Source of the DNA: Anaeramoeba ignava BMAN
Taxonomy: Eukaryota > Protista > Anaeramoebae
Assembly (NCBI GenBank): GCA_028826165.1
Contig: JAPDFW010000137.1
Coordinates: forward strand, 58,111 to 122,110
DNA: 64,000 nt
Direction of reading: 5' to 3'
Part shown: piece after piece, positions 48,150-64,000 of the stretch
How positions within the stretch are numbered: position 1 is the stretch's first letter
Layout: each line of letters opens with the position of its first letter
The notes under the pieces: generated by a model
The model's database searches: none
Seen by the model: only the letters and a program-made list of their open reading frames with translations
Told to the model about the DNA's origin: nothing
Position numbers and translations under genes: made by a program

Positions 48150-48295
48150 ATTATCTAATTTAAATTTTGGGTTTTTGGATTATTATTTTTTTATGTGATA
48201 TTCAAAGAAAAAGAGAAAAGAAAAAGAATTATTTTTTTTATTCCACTTTTTGTTTAAATTTTTTTTTTAAAAAAAATAAAAAGAAAAAAAATTAA

Positions 48296-48672
48296 ATTTT
48301 GATTTTAATTTTAATTTTAATTTTAATTTTAATTTTAATTTTAATTTTAATTTTAATTTTAATTTTAATTTTAATTTTGATTTTAATTTTAATTTTAATT
48401 TTAATTTTAATTTTAATTTTAATTTTAATTTTAATTTTTAATTTTAATTTTAATTTTAATTTTAATTTTAATTTTAATTTTAATTTTAATTTTAATTTTA
48501 ATTTTAATTTTGATTTTAGATTTTAATTTTAATTTTAATTTTAATTTTAATTTTAATTTTAATTTTAATTTTAATTTTAATTTTAATTTTAATTTTAATT
48601 TTAATTTTAATTTTAATTTTAATTTTAATTTTAATTTTAATTTTAATTTTAATTTTCATTTTCATTTTCATT
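48296..48672. repeat. (TTTTAA)n microsatellite directly 3' of the RNF213-like stop codon
   Basis: Direct reading of the sequence. Confidence 0.95.
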
Positions 48673-48673
48673 T

Positions 48674-51600
48674 TTAATTTTGATTTTGATTTTGATTTTC
48701 ATTAAAAATATCTGAGCAAAATTGATAAACATGAGAACTGTTTCCTAATAAAATTACTTCATCATTATCAAAATTTTCTTCAATTTCTTTATAAATATTT
48801 GTTGTTTTATCTTTAATTGAAAAAAGAAATAATTTTCTAAATGGATAATTATGATTCAAATTTCCTTTAAGTTTCCTAATAAAATCTTTCAAAACACAAA
48901 TAAAATCAAATATTGGGATATTTTTTGTAATTGTTTCTAATGAATTTTTCAATAATGAAATTTGGAAAGAAGTCATTTCCCATTTGAATCTTTTATCAAG
49001 ATTTTCCAAAATATTTTCAAAATTATCTTTAAATTGTTTATGAATAAATAAAAGATGTTTCATTTTAGCAAATTGTTTAAATTTTGATAAATCATTTTCA
49101 ATATCTTCCAAATTTTTAAATTCAAATTCAAATTGAAATTCAAGTTTTGTTTTAATAAATTCTATTATTGATAAATCTTTTAATTTTGAAAATTTATTTT
49201 CATTTTTAATATTTTGACATCCCAAAATTATATATTCAATAAGTTTTCCAAAAGTTCCAAACAAATTATTCTTTTCTAATTCTTCTTTAATTTGTTTCCA
49301 TTTATCATGATTTAATTCTTTTTGTTCCCATTTTTTTTCTGTTTCAAGAAATTCTGTTTTAATTTCAATTTGTTTTCCATAATAATTAAAATTTTCAATT
49401 TCAATTTTGAAAATATTTGTTTCTTTTAAATAATTTAATTTTTTTCTAATAAATTCTTCAATATAATCTAATTCTTGAATTAAATTATTATAATTTATAA
49501 ATTCTTGAAATTCTTGGATATTAAATTTGATAATTTTAATAAAATCTGAATTTAATATTTTTGGGAAATGAAGAATTGATTCTTTAAATCCTTGAATATT
49601 TTCATTATTTTCATTATTTTGATTTTCATTATTTTGATTTTCATTATTTTCATTATTTTCATTATTTTCATTATTTTCATTATTTTCATTATTTTCATTA
49701 TTTTCATTATTTTCATTATTTTCATTATTTTCGTGATTTTCATTATTTTCATTTTTTTCATTATTTTGATTATGTTGTGAATCTTGGAAAATAGATTTTA
49801 AAAATGGAGATTTAATTAATTCATTATGAAGATTAATTGAATGTTCAATTAATATTGGAATCATTAAATTATAATTTTCTTTTCCTGTTAAACAAAAATC
49901 AATTATATCTTCTTTTTTAATTTCATATTTGAAATTATCATCATTAATTTCTTTTGTAATTTGTAAATATTTAATTTCTTTTGAACTTAATTTCCAAAAT
50001 TTTTCAAATTGTAAATATAATTTATTGATTATTGGATTGTTTTCTGTTTCAATAAATTTTTGAATTTGAATTACTTTTGCTTCTTCTTTTGAAATTTTTC
50101 CATTCATTTTTTTCATTATTAAACTTGTAAATTTAATAAATCCTTCAAATAAATTTAATATTTCTAATTTTGGATAATTTTCAATTATAAATTTAATCAA
50201 TGGATATTTTTCAAAATCTTCTTCTTTTTTTTGAATGTATAAATTAATAATTGGATATAAATTTGGTTTTGATAAATCAAATAAATTTATTTTTGTTTTG
50301 GATTGTTGTAATTTTTTGTTGATTTTATATTTTTTTTTAATATTTGAAATTATTTTTTCATGATTCTTTTTGAAAACATCAGAAAATATTTCTTCCAATT
50401 TATTTCTTGTTTCAACTTCTTTGAAATTATCTTTTCTTAATAAAAAATTTGGAATTTTCTTTTTGGAAAATAATTTTAATGTTTCATTATAATAAAGTAT
50501 TGATTGATAATTTGTAAGATTTGTTAATTTGGATATAATCAATAAATCATTTTCAATATGAGAAATTAATTGTTTGATTAATTCTTTTTGGTTTTTTGGT
50601 TTAAAAACACAATTATTAATCATTGAAATGAAATGATTTGAAAATTTTTCAGAAATAATTGAAAAAGGAAGAATTGATGAATGAATTAATAATCTAATAA
50701 TTCTAAAAGTTATTGGATTTAATTTTCGATATGTTAATAATGGATTTGAATTTGGTATTTTAGAAACTGAATAAGATAAAACATTTTCAAAAAATTCTGA
50801 ATTAATTTCATTTTCTTTTAAATTTGATTTACAAAATTCACACCAATTTTGTAATTTAATATGAGAAGATTTCACAAAATTTAAATGTCCCTTTTCACAA
50901 AATTTCCAATAACTTTTTTCTTTTTCAAATTCTTGTTGAAATGGATGTGATCCCATTGATAAAAAATATAATTTTTCAAGTATTTCTTGTTTTAATTGTG
51001 ATTCTCCAACTTCAAATAAAAGATCAGATGAAAATAAAAGTTGAAATGGTTCAAGTTTTGTATTATCAATAAATTCAACACTTTGAATTATCATTTTGAA
51101 AATTTCTTTGTTTTCAATTTCTTTTTCAATTTCCCAAAAATTTCGATAAAATTGTGAAATAATATAACTTATTTTATGTTCTGAAACAAATGAAATATGT
51201 GTTTTTTGAAATTGTAATGATAAATCATTTTCAATTTCTTTTTGTTCATAATAATATAATAATGATTGATCTTTGTTCTTTTTTGGATATTCTATTATTA
51301 TTGAATCATCACTTTTTGAATTCAAAATATTTTGAGAAATTTCTAGTTCTTTAATTTTATCAGGAATTTCTTTTTCAATAAACTTTTGAAGATAATTTCT
51401 TCCTTTATCATTTTCAATTTCATTAAAAATAAATTTAATCCATATTTCTCCACTTTTTCTTGAAAAACTATTTTTAAATTTTTGTATTATTTTTTTTGGA
51501 TTTCGAAGTAACATTTTTCTTTTTTCAATAAATTTAATAATATTTTGAATTGAGAATTGATTTTTAGAAATTGCAACCATAATATTTTTTTCTTTCAAAT

Positions 51601-54600
51601 TTGGTTTAGATTCTTTCTTGGATTTTGAATTTAAATTTGAATTTGAAATTGAAATTGATTTCAGTTGTGATTTTGATTTTGGTTTTGATTGTGATTTTGT
51701 TTCTAATTTTGATTTTGGTTTTGATTCTTTCTTTAAATTAGGTAAATCTTGATTTTTAAAGAGATTTTGTTGAATAGATTTAATCTTGTTTCTTATTTCT
51801 TCATTTTCATTAATAATTTTTATACAAGAAATAAGAATAATATTTTCTGGTTTGTTTTCTAATATTTCTTGATTTGTATTTTTCAAAAATTCATCAATAA
51901 AATTAATAATTTCTTCATTATCTTCATTTGAATTTTCGTTTTGAATAAATGAAAATAAATTTTTAAGTATTGGATAAAAAATTGAATAAATATTTTCAAT
52001 TTGTTTAACTTTTAAAAATATTTCAATTTTTTCTATTGAATAATTTAAAAATTTTTGAATAAATCCAAAATTAAATTTTTTTGTTAATTTTTTCTTGAAT
52101 AAAAATTGTTGAAAAATTATTCTTCCATAAAATGTTAAATATTCTGAAAATTTATGGAAAATATTTATAATTTCTTTTCTATATTCTTCAATTTTACTTT
52201 TTCTAATTGTTCTGAAATGTTTTGTATCATTTTCTTCAATTTCTTCTTCACAAATTGAACATTTTCCTTCATTACTTTCCAAACATAAATAAATTGGTTT
52301 TTTTTCTTTTTGAGATTTTTTACAAATTTTGATGTTTTTATAATTAATATTTTCTGAAAATAATTCTTCAATTAATTCATTTGTTATTTTATTAATCATT
52401 AATTCATTTTCAATTTTTTGATAATTATAATTTTCTCGTGTTTTTTTTGGATTTAATTGTTTTAATTGAATTGAAAATTGTTTTTGGAATGTTTGAATAA
52501 TCCATTCATTATAAAGTTTTTCAATTTCTTCTTTTTCTTCTTGTTTTTGATTTATTTCAATCCAAAATTCAAATAATTCTTCAATATTATCATTTTGAAT
52601 TATTTCTTCTTTATCTTCTTTTATTTTTTCAATCAATTCTTTCATAAATAATAAAAATGAAAATCTTTTTCTCTTTTCATTTTTTCTTTTTGTTTTGAAA
52701 TTAATTAATTTGGAAATAAAAAGTAAATTAATTAATTTTTGATGAATTTTTTCAAAATAAATTTGTTGAATTTTTTGAAATGAAATTGTTTCTATTTTTT
52801 CATTGGATTGTTGTGAATAATAATTTTTGATAATTCTTCTTAAATTAATTTTTAATTTTTGGAAAATATTTTCTTGTTCTGGATTAAGAACCAATTTGAT
52901 AAAATCTTTTAAATATTTTTGAATAATTTCATTATTGAAAGATGAATCAATAAATGTAATAATTTTGTTTTGTTGAGAAATTGTTTCATTTTGTTGAATT
53001 ATTGAATAAATTATTGATGAAAATGGAAATTCTTGTTTAATTGTTTTTGTTTTGTAAATTGGATAACAAGGAATTTCAAATTGTTGAAATATAACATCCC
53101 AAATTTCTTTCATTTTTTCATCTTTTGAATTTAATAAAATTGATAAATTTTCATTTTGATTTATATTTTGGAAAAATATATCAAAAATTTCAATTAAATC
53201 TTCTTTAACTTTATCAAATAAAATACTTATAAATTTCTTTTTCTTTTGTTTGAAATTATGTAAAATATCAAAAATTTCCCATTTAAAATTTTCATGTTTT
53301 GATTTAATTGATAATTCAATCATTTCTCTAATTTTTTGGAAAATTTGTTCTTTCATTTCTTCATTCTTAAAAAGGTTTTTTTCAATTAATTCTTTTTCTT
53401 TTTTGAAATTTTCATTTGTTAAATCTTTTTCTTTTGAAAGAATTATTCCTAAATTTTCTATTATTATTTTTTCTATTTGTTTGTTTTCTTGTAAATAATC
53501 AAATGATTCTAAAAGATTTTGAGGTAAATTTTTAAGATTAAATAAAGGTTCAATTTCTTCAATATAATAATGTTCCCAATTTTTTTCAAAATAAAAAGGA
53601 AATGATTTAGAATTTGAAGTGAAAGATAAATGAATAAATAATATAATATAAGAATTCTCTATTTTGTTTTGATTATTGTTTTGAGAAATTATTTGTTCAA
53701 TTAAAATTTTAATTTGATAAAATAATTCAATTTGATTTTGTTTGAAATGAATAATTAAAATATTTTTTTCTTTTGGAATATTGGAAATTAATTCTTCATT
53801 TTCTTCTTTGATAATTTTATCTTTGTTTTGTAAATCTAAAATTTTAAATGAATATTCTGAATATTTTTCTTCAATTTTTCCAATTTCTCTTTTATATCCT
53901 CTTGTAAAAATTATTGATTTTTTCACTTTATTTTTTAAAATTTCTTCATTTAAAAGTTCTTCAAAATTATTGTAAATAGATGAAAAATATTCTTCTTTGA
54001 TTTGATTAACTTTTTGAATTTGTTTTTTTGATAATAATTCTTTAATTTCAATCATTTTTTCAAATTTAAAAAATTGAATAATTTTCTTTTTGATTTTTTC
54101 TTCTTGATCTTTTTCATTTTGATATTTAAGAATAAGTGAAGAAAATGAGTTTTGATTAAATTCAATAATTAAATCTTCTTTTTAATTTTGTTTTCAGTAA
54201 ATTGTTTGATTGGATTTAATATTTTGAATATTTTGGATGATGATTGTTTTGGAATATTAAAAGAAGAAATATCAATTAAATGTTTTTCAAATTGATTTAA
54301 TAAATTAGGTTGATTAAATTCATATTTAATTGCTTTTGTTGTTATAATTATTAATCTGAAATTTGGATTCATTTCAATTTTTCTTATTTCATTTTCAAAA
54401 CGAATTGTTATATAAAATTTTTCATTTTCTTTAATATAATTTTGATTAAATAAATCATCTAATAATGGATAAATTTTTTGATAATCAAGAAGAATTAACA
54501 TTTTTCCTTCATAAATACATTTTTCAATAATATCTAATATTTTATTAATTTCTTGATTTTCATTTTCTATTTGTGATTCTGATTTTATTAATGAATTTGA

Positions 54601-57600
54601 ATCAAATAAAATGATTGAATTTCTGGAAAAATATTGTAAAATTATTGAAAAAATTGAAATATTTGGAATAAATATCATTAAATGTCTTGATGTTTTTATA
54701 AAATCTGAATATTTTTGAATTTCATTTTCTTTTGATAATTCTTGAATATTTTCTTTTATTGATTGAAATGTATTGAATTCTGGAAGTTTTTCAAATCCTT
54801 CAATTTTACTATTTTCCAAAATTTGATTTAATATTTTTGATTTAATTCCAAAATTTCTAAAAAGAGATTCATAACAAATATCTAGAAGTAGTTTTTTCTT
54901 TTGTTCATTTCCATAATAAAATCCAATATTATTAAGGAAATATTGATAATCTTTAATTCCATAAAAATTTAATGGTGGTTGATTTTCTTGAAGAATTGTT
55001 TTTAATTGTTTTGAAATTATTTCATTTTGATTTTGATAAATTTTATAAAATAATTCAACAAAAATATTGGGATAATTTCTGTGTATTTCTTTAGAGAATG
55101 ATTTTGTAATTTCTTTTGTTGCAATTTCTAATTGATTTCGATTTAAATTTGATAATAATAACAAATTTTTTGAAGTTAATCCTGAAATTTCAAAATTTGT
55201 ATTTGTATTTGTTAATAAAATTAATGTAAATTTTGAATTTGAATTTGAATTTGAATTATAAATCATTTTATTCATAATTTTTTTGATTTTTGAATGAATC
55301 ATAATTAAATTTTCTTTTGATAAATTTGTGAAATTTTTTAAAATTATTATTGGAATAATTTGTTTTTGTTTTTGTTTTTTGATGTTTTGGAATTGATTTT
55401 GAAGATATTCTTCTGTAAATATTTGTGAACATTGAATTTTAAATTGTTTTATTTGTGGAAGATTCCATTGTTTTAAATTTTGATCTTCATTTTGATTTTG
55501 ATTTTTATTTTGAGAAGATGAAAATGAATTGAAAATAGATTGAAAAGATTTTTTTGAAATTGCTATTTTTGTTTTAAATAAAAATAAAAATAAAAATAAA
55601 TTAATTTAATAATTATTTTTGTTATTAATTTGTTATTAATTTACCTAAATTATCAATTATTAATAAAGGTATTTGTGTAAAAAATGAAATAAATATTGAT
55701 AAAATATTTTCATTAAAATTTTGATTTTGGAAAAGATTTGTTTTGGTTAAATTAAATTGAATTGATTGAATTAAACTTTTTGTTAATTTATCAATAATTC
55801 CTTTAATTTTTATTTTTTCTAAATCTTTTTTAAAATTTCCATTTATTTTAATCTTTTTGAAATTTTCTTCAACTTTTAATAAAAATTCTTCTTTTTCTTT
55901 TTCAATAAAATATGATCCATAAACAACAAACAAAGATATTAGCATACTTTCTCTAAATATAACTCGATTTTTATTTGATAGATCATTAAATTTTTTGCAA
56001 ATTTCTTTTTCAATTAACCATTGGAAAATATTGAGAAATATGAAAACATCTTGTAATGATTGAATGGAATAATTTGTTTTGTTTTGTTGTTGAATATAAT
56101 TTCTTGAAAAATTAATTGTTTCTAAAATAATTTGAATAATTTTTTCTTTATCAATATTAACTAATTTTTTTGGAAATTTTTGGTAAATCATTGATAAAAT
56201 ATAATTGTTTTCTCCTTTTTCGCTTAAATTCCCAAAATCATAAATATCTTCAAAAAATGAATCAGGAATTAATTGAGGTTTTGAAATTATTTCTTCAATT
56301 ATATTTGATTCATTTGATTCATTTGGTTTGATTTGAGAAGAATATTTTTTTGATTGAAATGATTTGATTGAAGCTAATAAATTAATTTGTTTTGATAAAT
56401 TTAATAAATCAAAAGATCGATCTATTAAAATTTTCTTTAATAAAATTATGCATTCTTTTGATCCTGTATTGAAATCATTGAATAAAATATTAATTTTTGA
56501 ATTTGGTTTTTCTTTGATAATATTTTCAGCTTTTTCAATAATTTGTTCAATATCTTTTTTGGTTGTTTTAGAATTAATATTTAGAATTATTAATTTTTGT
56601 TTTAAGATTTCTTCTAATAAATAATGAATTAATAAGTTTTTCTCATAATCATTTCCTTCAATAAAAATAACTGGAAGTTTTGCTATTAATCTATAATGAA
56701 TATTGATTAATTTCATTAGGTTATTTGAAGTTAGAAATATTGGATAATCTTTTATATCTTGTTTTGAATTAAAAGAATTGAGAATTTTCAAAATAATTTC
56801 TTTTTCAATTTCAATTTTCTCTTCATCATTTTGGAAATTTTCATAAATTTTAATCAATACATTATTGTTTAAAAAATTTTCTAATTTTTGATTAAATAAT
56901 GATTTGATTTGATTATTGCTTATAATTATCATTTCAAGTGATTCATTTTTGTTTTGATTTAAAAAAATTGGGAAAGTGAAAAATTTTTGATTCCAATCAA
57001 TTCTATCTTTTAATAAATTTGAGAAATCTTCAAATTCATTTGTTTCTAATTTTTCTATTTTTGTACTCCATTTAATATAACGTGAAGAAATATTAACAAT
57101 AGAATCTAAATAAAATGAAAATAATTGTGAAATAAATTTTTCATAAATTTCTTCATTTTCTTCTTTGAATAAAATTATTCTTAATTGATTTGAATCCAAA
57201 AATTGACAATTTTGTAATAAAATTATTTGGGATTTTAAAATTGAACAAATAATAAATATTATTCTGAAAGTTAAAGGTTGACCTGGTAATTTTTGTAAGA
57301 TTTTCTTTTCAATTAAATTAAAGAATTCTTTTTTATCTGGTTCTTGATTAATAAATTCTTTTCTTTTTTCAATTTGAAGATTTTTAAATTGTTTGAAATT
57401 ATTATTACTTAATTCAATTAATTTAGCAACATTTTTCAATTTTTTATCTTCAATTTTTTCAATTATAAAATTTGGATTTAATTTAAATTTAATAAATGAA
57501 AATTCATCATAATTAACTTGACATTCTTTTTCTTGAAAATATTTTAATGATTGGAAATGATTTAATCCATTTTCTGAATTTTCTTTTCTATTACTTGGAA

Positions 57601-60600
57601 TTTCAAAAGCTAAAAAACAATTATTTAAATCTTCTTGATTAAAATCAAAAATGAAATTTGATGATTTTTCTTTTTGTTTTCAAATAAATTCCACATTGTA
57701 AATCCCCAAATAAAATCTAAAGTTTCTAATTCTAGGTGAAAAAGGTAATTCAATATGAAAAAATTTCTTTTCTTTTTCTTTATCTTTAATAAAATCATTT
57801 GATATTTCTTTTGATAAAATGATATTGAAATATAGATAATTTTCTTTTTGATATTCTTCATTAAATTTTTTGTGAATTTGATAAGTTTTTCCCATTCCAC
57901 TAATTTTAGAAGTAAATAATTGTATTTTTGGATAAAGTTTGTGATATTTTTTGTAAATTTGTGATATTTTTTTTTTGGAAATAATTTTGATTTTGTTTGT
58001 TATTAAACATTTTGGAAATTGGTTAACAATTCTAAAATTTCCAATTTTCTCTTCATAAAAGAAAATTATTAATGGGAAATGAATTGTGAAAGAAATATTT
58101 TGAATTTTTTCAGTTAATACTTTTAAACATTCTTGAGATAATTTATGTGAATGAAGAATTGAAAATAAATATTTGTTTTTTGGAATATTTTCATATTTTT
58201 CATTATAAATTTGATAAATATTAAAGAAATTGTTAATATCATTTTTTGTTGAATTTGAATCACAAAATAATATATTTTCTTTTAAAGGGAAATGATTACA
58301 ATATCCTAAATATAAAGTTGTAACAATTTCATAAATTTCTTTTTCTTTTTCTAATTTATAAAAGAAAAATTTTTGATTTTGATTTTGATTTTGATTTTCA
58401 AAAATTTGATTAAATTGAGAATTTGATTTTTCTAAAATATTTTCATCAATTTTGATTATTCTTTGTTTGATTGAATTTTTGATAGGAATTAATTTTTCTA
58501 ATTCATTAATAAATGTTTTGAAAAAATTTGAATCAATTTTAATTTGGGAAATTTGAATTTTGAAATTTTTAAATTCTTCATTTTTTAAATTTGGTTTAAA
58601 TGATTTAAGAAGAGATAATGAATTATTGTTTTTGTTTTTGTTTTTGTTTTTGTTTTCAAAATGAAATTCTTTTATAATTGAAAAGATTTGTTCTTTTGAA
58701 AAAATTGAAAAAGTAAATTGAATATTATTATTGTTATTATTATTGATAAATTCTGAAAATAAATTATCAATTTGTTTTGTGAAATTTCTTTCTTCTTCAG
58801 TTTCTTTTTCTTTTTGTAATAAAATTAATTCTTCAATTTTTGTAAAAATTTTCTCTAATTTTTCTTGTGAAGGATTTATTTTTTGATAAATTTTGATAAT
58901 AATTTCAAATATATCATTAAATGATTTGAAAAGTTTTTCATTATATAAATATTCTTTAAATTCTTCTCTTAAATTTTGTAAATATTCTTTGGTTTGTTTT
59001 AAATTATTGTTATTGATTTTATCAAAAATTTCTTTAAATTCTTTATCATTTTCTAATTTTTGTAAAATTTGAATTGATTGAGGAAGTAATTCAAAATTAT
59101 ATTTCTTATTCAATGTACTACCAATAAATTTATAAATTTCTTGAAATATTTCATTAATTTTTGATAAATCTTTCATTTCTTTTTCATTTTTCAAATTTGG
59201 ATTAAAAAAATTAGAATAAAATTCATTTTCATATTTAAATAATGGAACAAATAAAATAAACCAATAAGGAATTTTGGAATAATTTTTTCTGTCTTCTTGA
59301 TATTTTAAAATTGGAGAACAAATTTGTTTAATTTTATCTTTAGGAATATTGGAAATTTCAAATAATAATTCAATTTCTTTTTCTAATAATTCTTTTGTCT
59401 TTTCATTTTCAATTATTTTTAAGAATAAATTTTCAAATTGTTTGATTTTCATTTTTTGATTTGAAATTAATTTTGTTTTTTTTATCAAATCATCTTGAAT
59501 TTGTTTAATTTTATTTTGTAAATCTTCAAATGAAATTTTCTTTTTTTCATTTATTAATGATTGTTGATATTCATTCCAATAAATATTTTGAAAAATTTGA
59601 GTTTGTTTCATTTTATAAAAATTTTGGATAATTTCTTCTTTAATTTTCAAATTTTGAATTGATTTTTTAATTTCATTAATTGATTTATCACTTTCAAATA
59701 AATTCAATATTTCTTTAATTTTTAAAATATCTTCTTCAATTAAAATTGGAGATAATTCAATTAAAATTGGATTTAATTCTTTTGATAAGAAGTTTTTTTG
59801 TTGATTTAATTGTTCAAATTCATTTTTTAAAATTTGGAAATTTGGTTTTTCGAATATAGCCCAAATTGGTGAATTTTCATAATTTTGATTAATAATTTCA
59901 GAAAGTTCTTTATAAGAAATATTTAAATTTTTTGATTTTTCAATAAAATTTTTCAATTTCTTTTTGATATTTTTTAATTGATTTAAGAAATTCAAATTTT
60001 GAAATTGTTTCATTTTCAATTTCTTTTATAAATAATAAAGCATCTATCCAAATATTTTTTTCTTGTTCTGGAAGTGAATTAAAGAATTGAAATAAATTTT
60101 GAGAATTAGTTGGTAATTTGTTTCCAATATAAGGTTTCCATGATTCAGTTTGTATTTCTAAGGGAATTTTTGAATAATATTTTTTTTCTTTAATAATATC
60201 TTCTTTGGAGATTTTATCATAATTTTTCTTTAACAAATTTTCAATTAAATTCTTTATAAATTCATCAATTTGATTTATTTTATCAAGTATTTTTGATTCA
60301 ATAATTATATTTAAACGTTCGTTTTTTCTTTTTGTTTTTGTAAAATATGGTTGAGCTTTTTAAATTATTATAAATTAATTGAAATTTTGATTGATTTGGA
60401 ATTTTAGTTTTGATTTTGAATCTGATTTTTGATTTTGATTTTGATTTTTGATTTTTGATTTTGATTTTGATTTTGATTTTGATTTTGATTTTTGATTTTG
60501 ATTTTTGATTTTGAATTTGATTTTGATTTTTATTTTTATTTTGATTTTGATTTTTGATTTTGATTTTGATTTTTGATTTTGATTTTTGAATTTGATTTTG

Positions 60601-62515
60601 ATTTTGATTTTTGATTTTGTTTTTTATTTTATTTTTATTTTTATTTTTATTTTTATTTTTATTTTTATTTTTATCTTTTATTTTTATTTTTATTTTATTT
60701 TTAGTTTTATTTTTAATTTTTATTTTATTTTTATTTTTATTTTTATTTTTATTTTTATTTTTATTTTTATTTTTATTTTTATTATTATTTTAGTTATTTT
60801 TATTTTTATTTTTATTTTTTTTGAGTTTTGATTTGATTTTGATTTTTATTTTTTGATTTTGATTTTGATTTTTATTTTTGATTTTGATTTTGATTTTGAT
60901 TTTGATTTTGGTTTGATTTTCATTTTGATTTGATTTTGATTTTGATTTTGATTTTGATTTTTGATTTTGATTTTTGATTTTTGATTTTGATTTTTGGTTT
61001 TTGATTTTGATTTTGATTTTTGAATTTGTTTTTGATTTTTGAATTTCATTTTGATTTTTTTGATTTTGATTTTTGATTTTTGATTTTGATTTTGAGAAAT
61101 AAAATCTTTGCTTTTCTCTTGTAAAACATAGTCCAATTATCTATCCAATTCCCTAAATTTTCTGTTTTGTAATTTACAATAATCTTAAAAAGAAAATTAT
61201 TTAATTTTCTTGAAAAAGTTGAATAAAAAATTTGCTTGGTTCATTTCCTGTAAATTCATTGAAAAAAAGATGAGTTAATTGATCACCATTTTGATAATAA
61301 TTTGTTTGGAAAAGTAAAGTTGTAGTTTCAATAAATTCTCCAATATTTTGATGATTAAATAAAAATTGTTGAATTTCATGATATATTTCTTCTGGTTTAA
61401 TATTTGAAAATACTTGGAAATCTTCAATTTGTTTTGATTTTTGACAAAAAAAATCAAATAAGAAAAATAATTTCATTTCAAATTTTTTTTCAGAAAAAAG
61501 AAAATCAACTAAAATATTCCTTAAATCTTCAATATGTGGTTCTTTTTGTATTAATATAAATGATTGAATTTCTTTTTCAATTGGTTGAAAGAAATTTTGA
61601 GATATTTTGGAATACTTCTTTCTTCAAAATATTATCCTGAATAAATTTTATGATATAAAAAATGGAATTAAAAATAAATGGAATGCACACATTTTGATCT
61701 TTTTGGAATTGAATTGAAACTTTTTAATTAAAGTTGGAACAACTTCTCCAAATTTAATATTTTCATTCCACATTTGTTTGTAAACCTGTGATCTCTTTTT
61801 CAATTTCTTTAGTTCTTTCCAACTTCTTTCTTTTTCTTTTTCTTTTTTTTTCTAACTTTTCTTTTTCCTGTTTTAATTGTTCAATTTTTTTTCATTTCTA
61901 AATCAAATTTAAAAATATTGTTATTTTTGAAATATCTGAATTGCTTGACAAAAAATAAAAGTTTTTCTTTCAAGTTTAAAATATCATTTTTGAATTATCT
62001 TTGAAATGTGACTCATGAAATTCATTTTGAATTATTTCTTGAATAATAACTTGACAAATTTCACCATCAGAATATTCTTCTTTTAAATTTTGATCAATGA
62101 AAAAAATAAAAATATGTTCTTCTTTTTCTTGATTTTTAAATGAAATTTTAATTTTGGATTTTTTTCCAGAAATTAAACGAGATGTAATAAAGCATTCTTT
62201 ATTTTTTTGTTTTTCAACGTTTTTAAATTGTTTTTTGGAATAAAAAATTGTTAAACTTTTTTCATTTTGATTTTGATTTTGATTTTGATTTTGATTTTGA
62301 TTTTTATTTTGATTTTGATTTTTATTTTGATTTTGATTTTGATTTTGATCTTGATTTTGATTTTGAAGACTTTTTTTGAGTAAATTTATTGTTTGTTCAT
62401 CAAATAAAAAAGAAACTAATTTATCATTATTATTATTTTGTGAATTTGGTTCATAAAGAAAAGTTGCATAAATATGAAAAGTTTTGAATTGGTTTTTGTT
62501 ATTTTTTAAACTCAT
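48674..62515 (-). CDS. RNF213: Giant RNF213/mysterin-like protein (AAA+ ring, E3 module, RZ finger) with degenerate catalytic motifs; several apparent frameshifts and at least 2 introns
   Basis: RNF213-like motifs in the expected order: SKISGMGKT, FHIEL, LTSNNLMKLINIHYRLIAKLPVIFIEG, ILFNDFNT, SLQDV..F..IFQW, NENI...IPLLII, KIQCS, YGIKDY, RNFG, SRHLMI, CIYEGKMLILL...LDDLFNQNY, NPNFRLIII, LLNQFEKH, FPFS, CEKGH...CEFC, RKLNPITFRIIRLLIH. Intron 55563-55644 is clear and a repeat-filled intron lies at about 60350-61100. The 5' structure beyond 60 kb is uncertain. Confidence 0.8.
60400..61092. repeat. (TTTTGA/TTTTTA)n microsatellite, probably intronic
   Basis: Direct reading of the sequence. Confidence 0.9.
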
Positions 62516-62646
62516 TTTTAATTTAAAAAAAAGGAAAAAAATGAAAAAAAAATGAAAAAAAATAATTTTCCTTTTTTTATTAAATTTATTTCTTGTTTTA
62601 AAAAAAAAAAGAGGAAAAAAAAATGGAGAAAAAAAAAAAAGAGGAA

Positions 62647-64000
62647 TTAAATTTCTGGACCAATTCTCAAACCGTAACCGAATAAATATTGGTCTCTAGG
62701 ATAATCAATTTCTGCTGATAAACGGAAGGGAAGCCAAAGGATGAAGCATTTCCTCAAAAAGCAATTTTACCTTTTTTACGCCTTAATCAAACTGTTTACT
62801 TTAACTTGTCTTAAACGGTAATAAAAACCGAAATCCATGACACTTTCTCCGTTGTCCAAATTATAGATAATTTCTGTGCCAAGACCGATTCTGTTTGAGA
62901 TTTTCTGGACATAAGAAGCGTTGAAATATTTGGCAGGAAAAGTGGAAAAGTTGTTGATACAACTGATTTTCAGTTGCGTATCTTGTTGAGAAGAGAAGCG
63001 TGAAGTTATCTCTTCATTTGTGAGTAATATGCAAGGTCTTCGATTCCTCCGCTTAATCTTGAATTTAAGGACTGATTGTACGATGTCTTGAATACTTTTT
63101 GATTCCTTCCTTTAATTGAAATACAAAATCCGCTGTAAATAATCTAGATCTATTAATATTCCTGATTCGGTCTTTTTTGCGATAGTAATGCTTGAATCGT
63201 TGTTACAATTGCTGTTTTTATTTGGTGTATATATTTTGCATTTAGTGTTCCAGTGTTATCTAGATGTCCGATTAATGCATACTTTTAAATGATTTCATAA
63301 ATTAATTTTAAATTTAATAAATTAATTTTAATTTTATAAATTTTTAATTTTATAAATGAATTTTAATTTTTATAAAATGTGAATTTTAATTTTAATTTTA
63401 ATTTTAATTTTGATTTTTAATTTTTAATTTTAATTTTAATTTTAATTTTTGATTTTAATTTTAATTTTAATTTTGATTTTAATTTTAATTTTAATTTTAA
63501 TTTTAATTTTAATTTTTAATTTTAATTTTTGTAAAATGAATTTTAATTTTAATTTTTAATTTTAATTTTAATTTAATTTTAATTTTAAAATTTTAATTTT
63601 GATTTAATTTAATTTTAATTTTAATTTGCACCTTTGATTTTAATTTTAATTTTTAATTTTAATTTTACAATTTTTAATTTTAATTTTTGATTTTAATTTT
63701 TAATTTTAATTTTTAATTTTAATTTTTAATTTTAAATTAAATTTTAAATTTGAATTTTGATTTCAATTTTATAAAATGAATTTAATTTTGATTTTAATTT
63801 TTGGAATTTCAATTTTAATTTTGATTTTGGTTCTTTTTAATTTTAAATTTTGTAATTTGAAATCTAAATTTATGTAAATTTAGTAATTATAATTTTAATT
63901 TTCAATTTTAATTGGATTTTCAATTTTAAACAAATTTTTGATTAAATTCTTGAATAAATTTACATGATCTCAAATAAATCTGTTAGAAACCTCTCTGACT
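62647..64000 (-). CDS. TOM40: Tom40 outer-membrane translocase channel: last exon 63281-62647, intron 63282-63963, upstream exon runs off the window; multiple indels
   Basis: Frame-hopping translation gives YALIGHLDNTGTLNAKY, DLDY, SYNQSLNSRLSGGIE, TRYAT, FNASYVQKISNRIGLGTEIIYN...DFGFYYRLRQ, EEML, and LSAEIDYPRDQYLFGYGLRIGPEI*. Compare plant Tom40 SYVQKISDKVSL...YILRQ...[21 protein letters not shown] (from memory). Confidence 0.85.
63300..63900. repeat. Degenerate (TTTTAA)n in the Tom40 intron
   Basis: Direct reading of the sequence. Confidence 0.88.

Follow-up and report, generated by a model that had tools for sequence, protein, structure and literature searches.

A putative non-enzymatic RNF213-like giant within an old clade of Anaeramoeba ignava paralogs

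The 64,000-nt stretch of Anaeramoeba ignava BMAN considered here (contig JAPDFW010000137.1, positions 58,111–122,110; hereafter the window, with positions counted from its first letter) contains a giant gene related to RNF213, which spans about 62.5 kb to 48.68 kb on the minus strand. The gene probably encodes a non-enzymatic RNF213-like giant and falls within a single old clade of A. ignava paralogs. In columns anchored by these paralogs, AAA3 and AAA4, both of which are active ATPases in mammals, are without their Walker residues, as a first-pass annotation of the same DNA had claimed. The P-loop of the upstream module AAA2 is intact.

RNF213 is the human moyamoya disease gene and an antibacterial ligase, and the purpose of its ATPase ring is debated. 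Anaeramoeba ignava is an anaerobic amoeba that houses sulfate-reducing symbionts.

Relationship to RNF213

Homology searches were run exon by exon; pieces on each side of stops were searched separately and no joined spliced protein was used. Pfam returned nothing relevant for six open reading frame (ORF) pieces of the gene, and phmmer searches of the PDB with the AAA3 exon, the upstream exon or the C-terminal ORF, each alone, gave no RNF213 match. Exon 2, downstream of the intron described below, matches human and mouse RNF213 directly (phmmer, E=4e-15).

Profiles connect the other regions to RNF213. A profile of paralog AAA3 exons, with the window as its first row, matches RNF213 chains at E=1.6e-58 and pairs its motif columns with RNF213 IIMGETGCGKT, FFDEANT, VSLRD and KIPLFLVG. 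The exon-2 profile (AAA4–AAA5), also headed by the window, reaches E=3e-60 and places its Walker B column on VVVLDEVGLAE. With a C-terminal profile, built from the window ORF and homologues, the match to RNF213 extends from the RZ finger as far as the C-terminus (E=2e-58). The three regions are collinear with RNF213. Judged from these alignments, the window gene is a true RNF213 relative. Family membership had been proposed in the first-pass annotation, and both profile matching and structure prediction found RNF213: the direct exon-2 match, the three profiles and the best Foldseek matches of a model of the near-copy C4 all agree.

Degenerate motifs in AAA3, AAA4 and the RZ finger

In mammalian RNF213, AAA1 is without Walker motifs, AAA2 binds a co-purified, non-hydrolysed structural ATP that glues AAA2 to AAA3, and AAA3 and AAA4 are the only competent modules (PMC7311170). 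The corresponding features of the window gene are as follows.

48677..62515, minus strand: RNF213-like giant gene as assembled, ~4,300–4,600 codons in a chain of long open segments
57884..57910, minus strand: intact AAA2-type P-loop SKISGMGKT (TSxxxGxGK[TS] in the family; the window reads TSKISGMGKT)
56636..56659, minus strand: degenerate AAA3 Walker A, EGNDYEKN (GETGCGKT in relatives)
56474..56482, minus strand: degenerate AAA3 Walker B, FND (FDE in relatives, within FFDEFNT)
56048..56059, minus strand: AAA3 lid, SLQD (SLRD in relatives, within VSLRD)
55654–55645 and 55562–55549, minus strand: degenerate AAA4 Walker A, DNL/A/ISKK, split by an intron (GKPGSSKS in relatives)
55563..55644, minus strand: GT..AG intron of 82 nt, phase 1, inside the AAA4 Walker A, predicted from sequence and paralog comparison
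55333..55344, minus strand: degenerate AAA4 Walker B, ILKN (VLDE in relatives, within VILDE)
54259..55002, minus strand: AAA4-lid/AAA5 region, phmmer E=4e-15 to human and mouse RNF213 chains
50826..50912, minus strand: degenerate RZ-finger remnant with CxxGH...CxxC kept; the central CG cysteine (the column is S) and the distal histidine are absent

The exon structure 5′ of 60025 is obscured by microsatellites. Coding-like microsatellites of (AAG/AAT) type (KIKIKI, NQNQNQ) lie at 48270–48700 and 60300–61140, where they flank and interrupt the giant gene.

All motifs quoted in the first-pass annotation were found on the minus strand, no more than 2 nt from where it had placed them, and their equivalence to RNF213 motifs is fixed by own-genome paralogs and by the RNF213 profile alignments. 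A MAFFT alignment of 20 paralog exons from the same genome has GETGCGKT and VSLRD in 10 of them, FDEFNT in nine and FDELNT in a tenth; these columns are exactly those of EGNDYEKN, FNDFNT and SLQD in the window. The AAA3 Walker A and Walker B are almost invariant in 37 RNF213-like proteins from other eukaryotes and A. ignava. One environmental RNF213-like protein, P0038, is otherwise canonical and has FLKE as its AAA3 Walker B, the same D to K substitution that is seen in the AAA4 Walker B of the degenerate A. ignava copies.

The reading of AAA4 depends on the intron at 55644–55563. Many paralogs have open frames that stop at the same place, and the spliced reading matches intronless paralogs. 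The latter read IPLFLVGKPGSSKS and, further on, VVILDEVALAE; the window reads IPLLIIDNL, intron, AISKK and later IIILKNF. The proposed splice, and the Walker A DNLAISKK that it produces, therefore agree with the intronless copies.

Paralogs with intact Walker motifs are termed canonical here, and those without them dead. The central cysteine and distal histidine of the RZ finger are present in canonical copies and in other eukaryotes; their absence from the window is common to the dead paralog C64, a distant alignment that leaves this comparison provisional. Pfam did not find PF20173 (RZ) in the window C-terminal ORF, and the canonical paralog P0003 carries it. No RING was detected by Pfam in the ORF pieces scanned; a CxxCE...HF motif is present, and it also occurs in canonical P0003, which has no RING on record. 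Likewise, Pfam detected no CBM20 or N-arm in the N-terminal ORFs scanned, which belong to a partial 5′ gene model. The C-terminal E3 shell and C-terminal domain (CTD) are homologous to RNF213 by the C-terminal profile (E=2e-58).

It is conceivable that the protein is still an ATPase or a ligase and uses non-canonical residues, since a lysine survives in both EGNDYEKN and AISKK, and GxxG[TN]SK[ST] is still present as the AAA4 P-loop in most other members of the dead clade. This appears very improbable. In the window gene both loops have lost their glycines, and N or K stands where a Ser/Thr should follow the lysine. In place of the Walker B acidic pair AAA3 has ND and AAA4 has KN, Q replaces the lid arginine, and the RZ nucleophile column is not Cys. 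The near invariance of the AAA3 motifs in the 37 relatives also speaks against activity.

The AAA2 site and the predicted fold

A profile of the AAA2 region found no solved structure in the PDB, and the identity of AAA2 is therefore argued from a model, from fold matches and from the family-wide motif. TSxxxGxGK[TS] is kept in nearly all paralogs, dead or canonical, and its GK[TS] core is found in every paralog examined; one dead paralog, L020 (SKMGKS), keeps the core only and has lost the preceding glycine. SKISGMGKT precedes the AAA3 loop of the window gene by 416 residues; in RNF213-like proteins from molluscs, rotifers and environmental eukaryotes, TSxxxGxGK[TS] precedes GETGCGKT by 371–470.

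An AlphaFold2 (AF2) model was made of the C4 copy, which is 91%-identical to the window and uninterrupted from the AAA2 loop to the end of AAA3, with a 15-row paralog alignment. The model has a predicted local distance difference test score (pLDDT) of 77.9 and a predicted template modelling score (pTM) of 0.80. It places the AAA2 loop between a strand (26–30) and a helix (38–53), with EGNDYEKN at the equivalent strand–helix junction of the next module. In Foldseek, RNF213 chains are the best matches over the full length (E about 3e-21, template modelling score 0.62–0.66), followed by dyneins. VIA-align skips chains of >3,000 residues, so that RNF213 is absent from its results; it returned dynein rows only and aligned the model onto dynein AAA2–AAA3.

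The upstream P-loop is thus, by model and motif, the AAA2 loop of RNF213 type, and the AAA-ring fold is predicted to be kept in the window gene, in the form that the AF2 model of the C4 copy gives it. The claim that the earlier P-loop SKISGMGKT is intact and represents the structural AAA2 site fits the presence of the GK[TS] core in all paralogs examined and in RNF213-like proteins elsewhere.

A clade of dead paralogs

The AAA3 exon matches 81 places in its own 42.8-Mb genome, which group into about 53 loci. Forty genome stretches were taken for comparison. Motif classification gave 14 dead loci, 14 canonical loci and one intermediate among the ~53, about 24 of which fell outside the classification. 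The dead count combines nine Walker-dead rows on a tree with five loci assigned by motif reading. The first-pass annotation had suggested that active paralogs be looked for in the same genome, and the 14 canonical loci are such Walker-intact copies by motif. The dead loci are:

Young cluster: C138 (the window gene), C4, C111, C61, C59, C35
Deeper loci: C64, C127a, C93a, C1a, C93b, C65, C55, C129

With nine outgroup proteins in the tree, the A. ignava copies all group together in one clade (Shimodaira–Hasegawa-like approximate likelihood ratio test, SH-aLRT, 95). Walker-dead copies form a single clade among the canonical ones (SH-aLRT 99 for eight rows, 85 for nine), and one change of state suffices. 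Terminal branches within the dead clade are long, at 1.3–1.8 changes per site, and its members hold open frames of 600–1,800 codons at 25–45% mutual identity. The AAA4 Walker B aspartate is lysine in every dead-clade member read (ILKE, FKE, LKD, LKN). The AAA4 P-loop is kept in most of them (GKPGTSKT, GNSGTSKS, GRPGNSKT) and is lost only in the young cluster of the window. The tree gives the dead clade a single origin, and its branch lengths make it appear old. The window gene is no isolated case but the most degenerate among at least 14 dead loci. Two points weigh against this dating and grouping: the tree alignment included the motif columns, and the age of the clade is read from branch lengths in one species. 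An orthologue from A. flamelloides was looked for and none was recovered.

Some own-genome matches cover only the AAA3 half of the query (276–676) and have short open frames of ~410–430 aa (C126:357226-358314, C79:51664-52872 and C1:654557-655690). These may be family fragments or short genes.

That the motif losses are sequencing or assembly errors is barely credible, even though the assembly does hold single-base errors in this gene family. The same substituted motifs recur in six separately assembled near-copies, related degenerate forms are found in eight deeper loci, and the changes are multi-residue in-frame substitutions, not indels.

The family is partly known already, in that GenBank labels some of its members ‘E3 ubiquitin-protein ligase rnf213’; the dead-clade product P0045 is among those that bear this name. 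The main text and available supplements of the Anaeramoeba genome paper make no mention of an RNF213-like family (PMC11550330).

Constraint on the dead lineage

Per-column identity is correlated between seven independent dead lineages and seven canonical ones (rho 0.37, p=3e-20). Dead copies have the canonical consensus residue in 57% of the non-motif columns that are conserved in canonical copies, compared with 31% of motif columns.

A second line of evidence comes from stop codons. The window is about 18% G+C, in keeping with the 80.65% A+T of the published genome (PMC11550330), and random codons of that composition should include a stop roughly once in ten, yet dead-clade members keep the long open frames given above. 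Random single-base changes in these A-rich codons make a stop in 7.4–8.6% of cases. The window, C4 and C111 copies together have 198 private substitutions, of which 14.6–17 would be expected to be nonsense changes and none is (P=2e-8 to 2.5e-7); for the window branch by itself the expectation is 3.9–4.5 and the count again zero (P=0.009–0.018). The 3′ 1,323 codons of the window and C111 have no internal stop, and C111 ends seven codons earlier.

The ratio of non-synonymous to synonymous substitution (dN/dS, or omega) gives a different picture, and it is a point against constraint on the window copy itself. Pairwise omega among young copies is 0.73–0.92, the value for the window versus C35 is 0.73, and omega on the window branch is 0.87, not distinguishable from 1. 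Walker-intact young pairs have omega values of 0.87 and 1.24, and C64 versus C127 has 0.94. Because pairs with intact Walker motifs give the same values, omega is undiagnostic here. The dN/dS comparison suggested at the outset was run on paralogs and is thus divided, with an own-branch omega that does not differ from 1 and an absence of nonsense changes.

Between the window (54537–58479) and the C35 copy (L005), dS swings from 0 to 0.63 in 100-codon blocks, a mosaic that points to gene conversion among the young RNF213-like copies.

Conservation across the clade, together with nonsense depletion, indicates that the dead lineage is constrained and not decaying.

Frame breaks and the possibility of a pseudogene

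The window gene has two near-copies: C111, with ~96% identity along the entire gene, and C4, with 95% as far as a contig end. Against both of these the window has four private 1-bp differences, which weigh against an intact coding gene and are listed here with the stretch that two of them enclose.

59953: +1, A5 (59949..59953) versus A4 in C4 and C111, with a frame change
57732: +1, a private extra G
57672: −1, a private missing G
57672..57732, minus strand: out-of-frame stretch of 21 codons between the AAA2 P-loop and AAA3, with an in-frame TGA at 57682–57680
54184: −1, A5 (54179..54184) versus A6 in all sister copies; the frame ends four codons later (KKKI*)

The principal alternative to a constrained pseudo-enzyme is that the window copy is an ordinary young pseudogene, i.e. 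a redundant duplicate within the dead clade that decays neutrally and whose frame breaks are real. The four private indels and the in-frame TGA are what would be expected of such a copy, as is the window-branch omega of 0.87. C4 and C111 likewise carry indels of this kind, a different set in each, and the reading of C61 and C59 is spread over several frames. At 54184 the A5 is private to the window, and X1 contigs, which show no extra base, do not contradict it; the sole X2 contig with A6 is C4-like. In addition, no transcript of the window copy was found, and a look for RNA runs returned none; a word search with the AAA3 exon matched only P0001, which is the C35 copy.

The quality of the assembly bears on most of these points. 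It is a Nanopore R9 assembly polished with Pilon, in which errors persist where copies are locally identical (PMC11550330), and every indel in question whose length is not a multiple of three is one base long and falls within an A-rich run. Over 400 nt around the TGA, nothing but the two indels distinguishes the window from C4, which is the situation where Pilon polishing of a Nanopore R9 assembly fails. Read evidence takes the form of Logan contigs; as the copies are near-identical, position 57732 is at best settled by it. There, all short-read-type contigs are without the G (205/205 and 16.7/16.7 depth), and sister copies have A or G where the window has AG. The transcript-derived P0001 corresponds to the C35 copy at 98–99% in two reading frames whose junction is the site homologous to 57672. 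The C35 assembly (L005, G000:C35:107104-111714, about 1500–1515) misses the same G, and the transcript reads through. Contigs encoding P0001 were searched for and none was found. Two of the four indels are thus contradicted, 57732 by the contigs and 57672 by the C35 transcript at the homologous site, and the TGA at 57680–82 with its flanking indel pair is probably an assembly artefact. Transcription is shown for the sister copy C35 only.

The depletion of nonsense changes is difficult to reconcile with neutral decay, as none occurs on the window branch (~4 expected, P about 0.01) or in the three copies together (15–17 expected), and the high omega is equally found in Walker-intact young pairs (0.87–1.24). 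Copies that are kept open against substitutions are a poor fit to a neutral pseudogene and make most of the single-base indels suspect. An ordinary pseudogene is accordingly an unlikely explanation, one that retains some weight. Nonsense depletion and conservation that bypasses the motifs indicate that the window gene is probably something else. Of the original pseudo-enzyme claim, the loss of catalytic residues, the predicted retention of the fold and the constraint on the clade hold; the window copy's omega, not distinguishable from 1, and two homopolymer frame breaks in the assembly (59953 and 54184) do not fit it.

A proposed function for the dead copies

Gone from the clade as a whole are the AAA3 nucleotide site (Walker A, Walker B and lid arginine) and, in all members read, the AAA4 Walker B aspartate (D to K); at least the window cluster and C64 also appear to lack the RZ-finger nucleophile. 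What remains is the AAA2 P-loop, the structural ATP site in RNF213, together with the predicted AAA-ring fold and the C-terminal RZ-to-CTD scaffold. The young subgroup (C138, C4, C111, C61, C59 and C35) has gone further by losing the AAA4 P-loop as well. A protein of this kind could be held in one fixed ring conformation, with both motor sites gone, the RZ finger without its nucleophile column and the AAA2 glue site intact. Its contribution would be by binding only, as a structural partner of active paralogs in the role of adaptor, cap or dampener.

Work on mammalian RNF213 provides the basis for this proposal. Mutating the Walker A of AAA3 or of AAA4 abolishes E3 activity, since ATP binding is the allosteric activator (PMC12075652). 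Walker A or B mutants of either module form no coats on bacteria or Toxoplasma vacuoles, and the coats grow by cooperative incorporation (PMC11549300). As ATP binding by AAA3/AAA4 in mammals switches the ligase on and is needed for coats, a protein without these sites should be unable to switch, or to ubiquitylate as RNF213 does. Its most likely role would be that of a structural partner of active paralogs with a fixed conformation, whether adaptor, cap or dampener.

A bolder proposal is that the dead giants join assemblies of the active paralogs, of which there would be ~35 or more, and that they poison or cap coats of RNF213 type. Cell-autonomous ubiquitylation would thereby be tuned so that symbiosome bacteria are tolerated and prey or invaders are attacked. 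This is speculative, and the odds are clearly against it. If true, it would represent a built-in dominant-negative arm of a protist RNF213 immune system.

A neighbouring G+C-rich patch

A patch of ~38% G+C (62640–63290, minus strand) stands out from surroundings of 18% G+C immediately upstream of the giant gene. It has short open frames in several phases, and a 111-aa frame matches the Pfam family Eukaryotic porin (PF01459) at E=1.6e-4, a weak match that is below the gathering score. Rfam and tRNA scans of the patch gave no match. The patch may represent an intron-containing gene of Tom40/VDAC type, or a remnant.

Comparison with known systems

The RNF213 family is expanded in chemosymbiotic bivalves (PMC9993606), which are also hosts with bacterial symbionts and offer a loose precedent. 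They differ in being animals with a much smaller expansion, and the text of that paper describes no catalytically dead clade (PMC9993606). The ~50-copy expansion with a dead branch in a symbiont-housing amoeba suggests that RNF213-type immunity is ancient and is regulated by pseudo-enzymes.

Mammalian RNF213 (mysterin; PDB 6TAX, 8S24, 9JW1) resembles the window gene product as a giant single chain with a dynein-like AAA ring. The AAA2 P-loop, AAA3, AAA4, AAA5 and RZ-to-CTD regions are collinear in the two (profile E values 1e-58 to 1e-60), and mammalian RNF213 is the best structural match of the AF2 model of the C4 copy. In contrast to it, the window gene has no AAA3/AAA4 Walker motifs, lid arginine, RZ nucleophile or distal His, no RING or CBM20 that Pfam could detect in the ORFs scanned, and a shorter N-terminal part. 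RNF213 is single-copy in mammals, and the window gene is one of about 53 paralogs.

The canonical A. ignava paralogs (C70, C128, C46; NCBI M0811_04787) are products of the same lineage-specific expansion. The AAA2 loop is common to all copies, and some canonical ones share the intron inside the AAA4 Walker A. They differ from the window gene in keeping GETGCGKT, FFDEFNT, VSLRD, GKPGSSKS and VILDE, and P0003 has a Pfam-detectable RZ finger. The paralog series can be looked at as a natural mutational dissection of the RNF213 ATPase ring, with steps that run from fully active copies, through copies with AAA3 dead and the AAA4 P-loop kept beside a Walker B changed from D to K, to copies in which all is dead except the AAA2 glue site. 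From the motifs kept throughout this series, AAA2 seems to be the one nucleotide site that the fold cannot lose.

Lastly, the inactive AAA modules of dynein and midasin, and pseudoenzymes generally, are comparable in that an AAA fold serves as a structural or nucleotide-binding unit without hydrolysis, and dead forms exist beside active paralogs. The present case differs from dynein and midasin in that the whole protein appears to have lost every known catalytic centre, and in that this loss defines a diversified clade.

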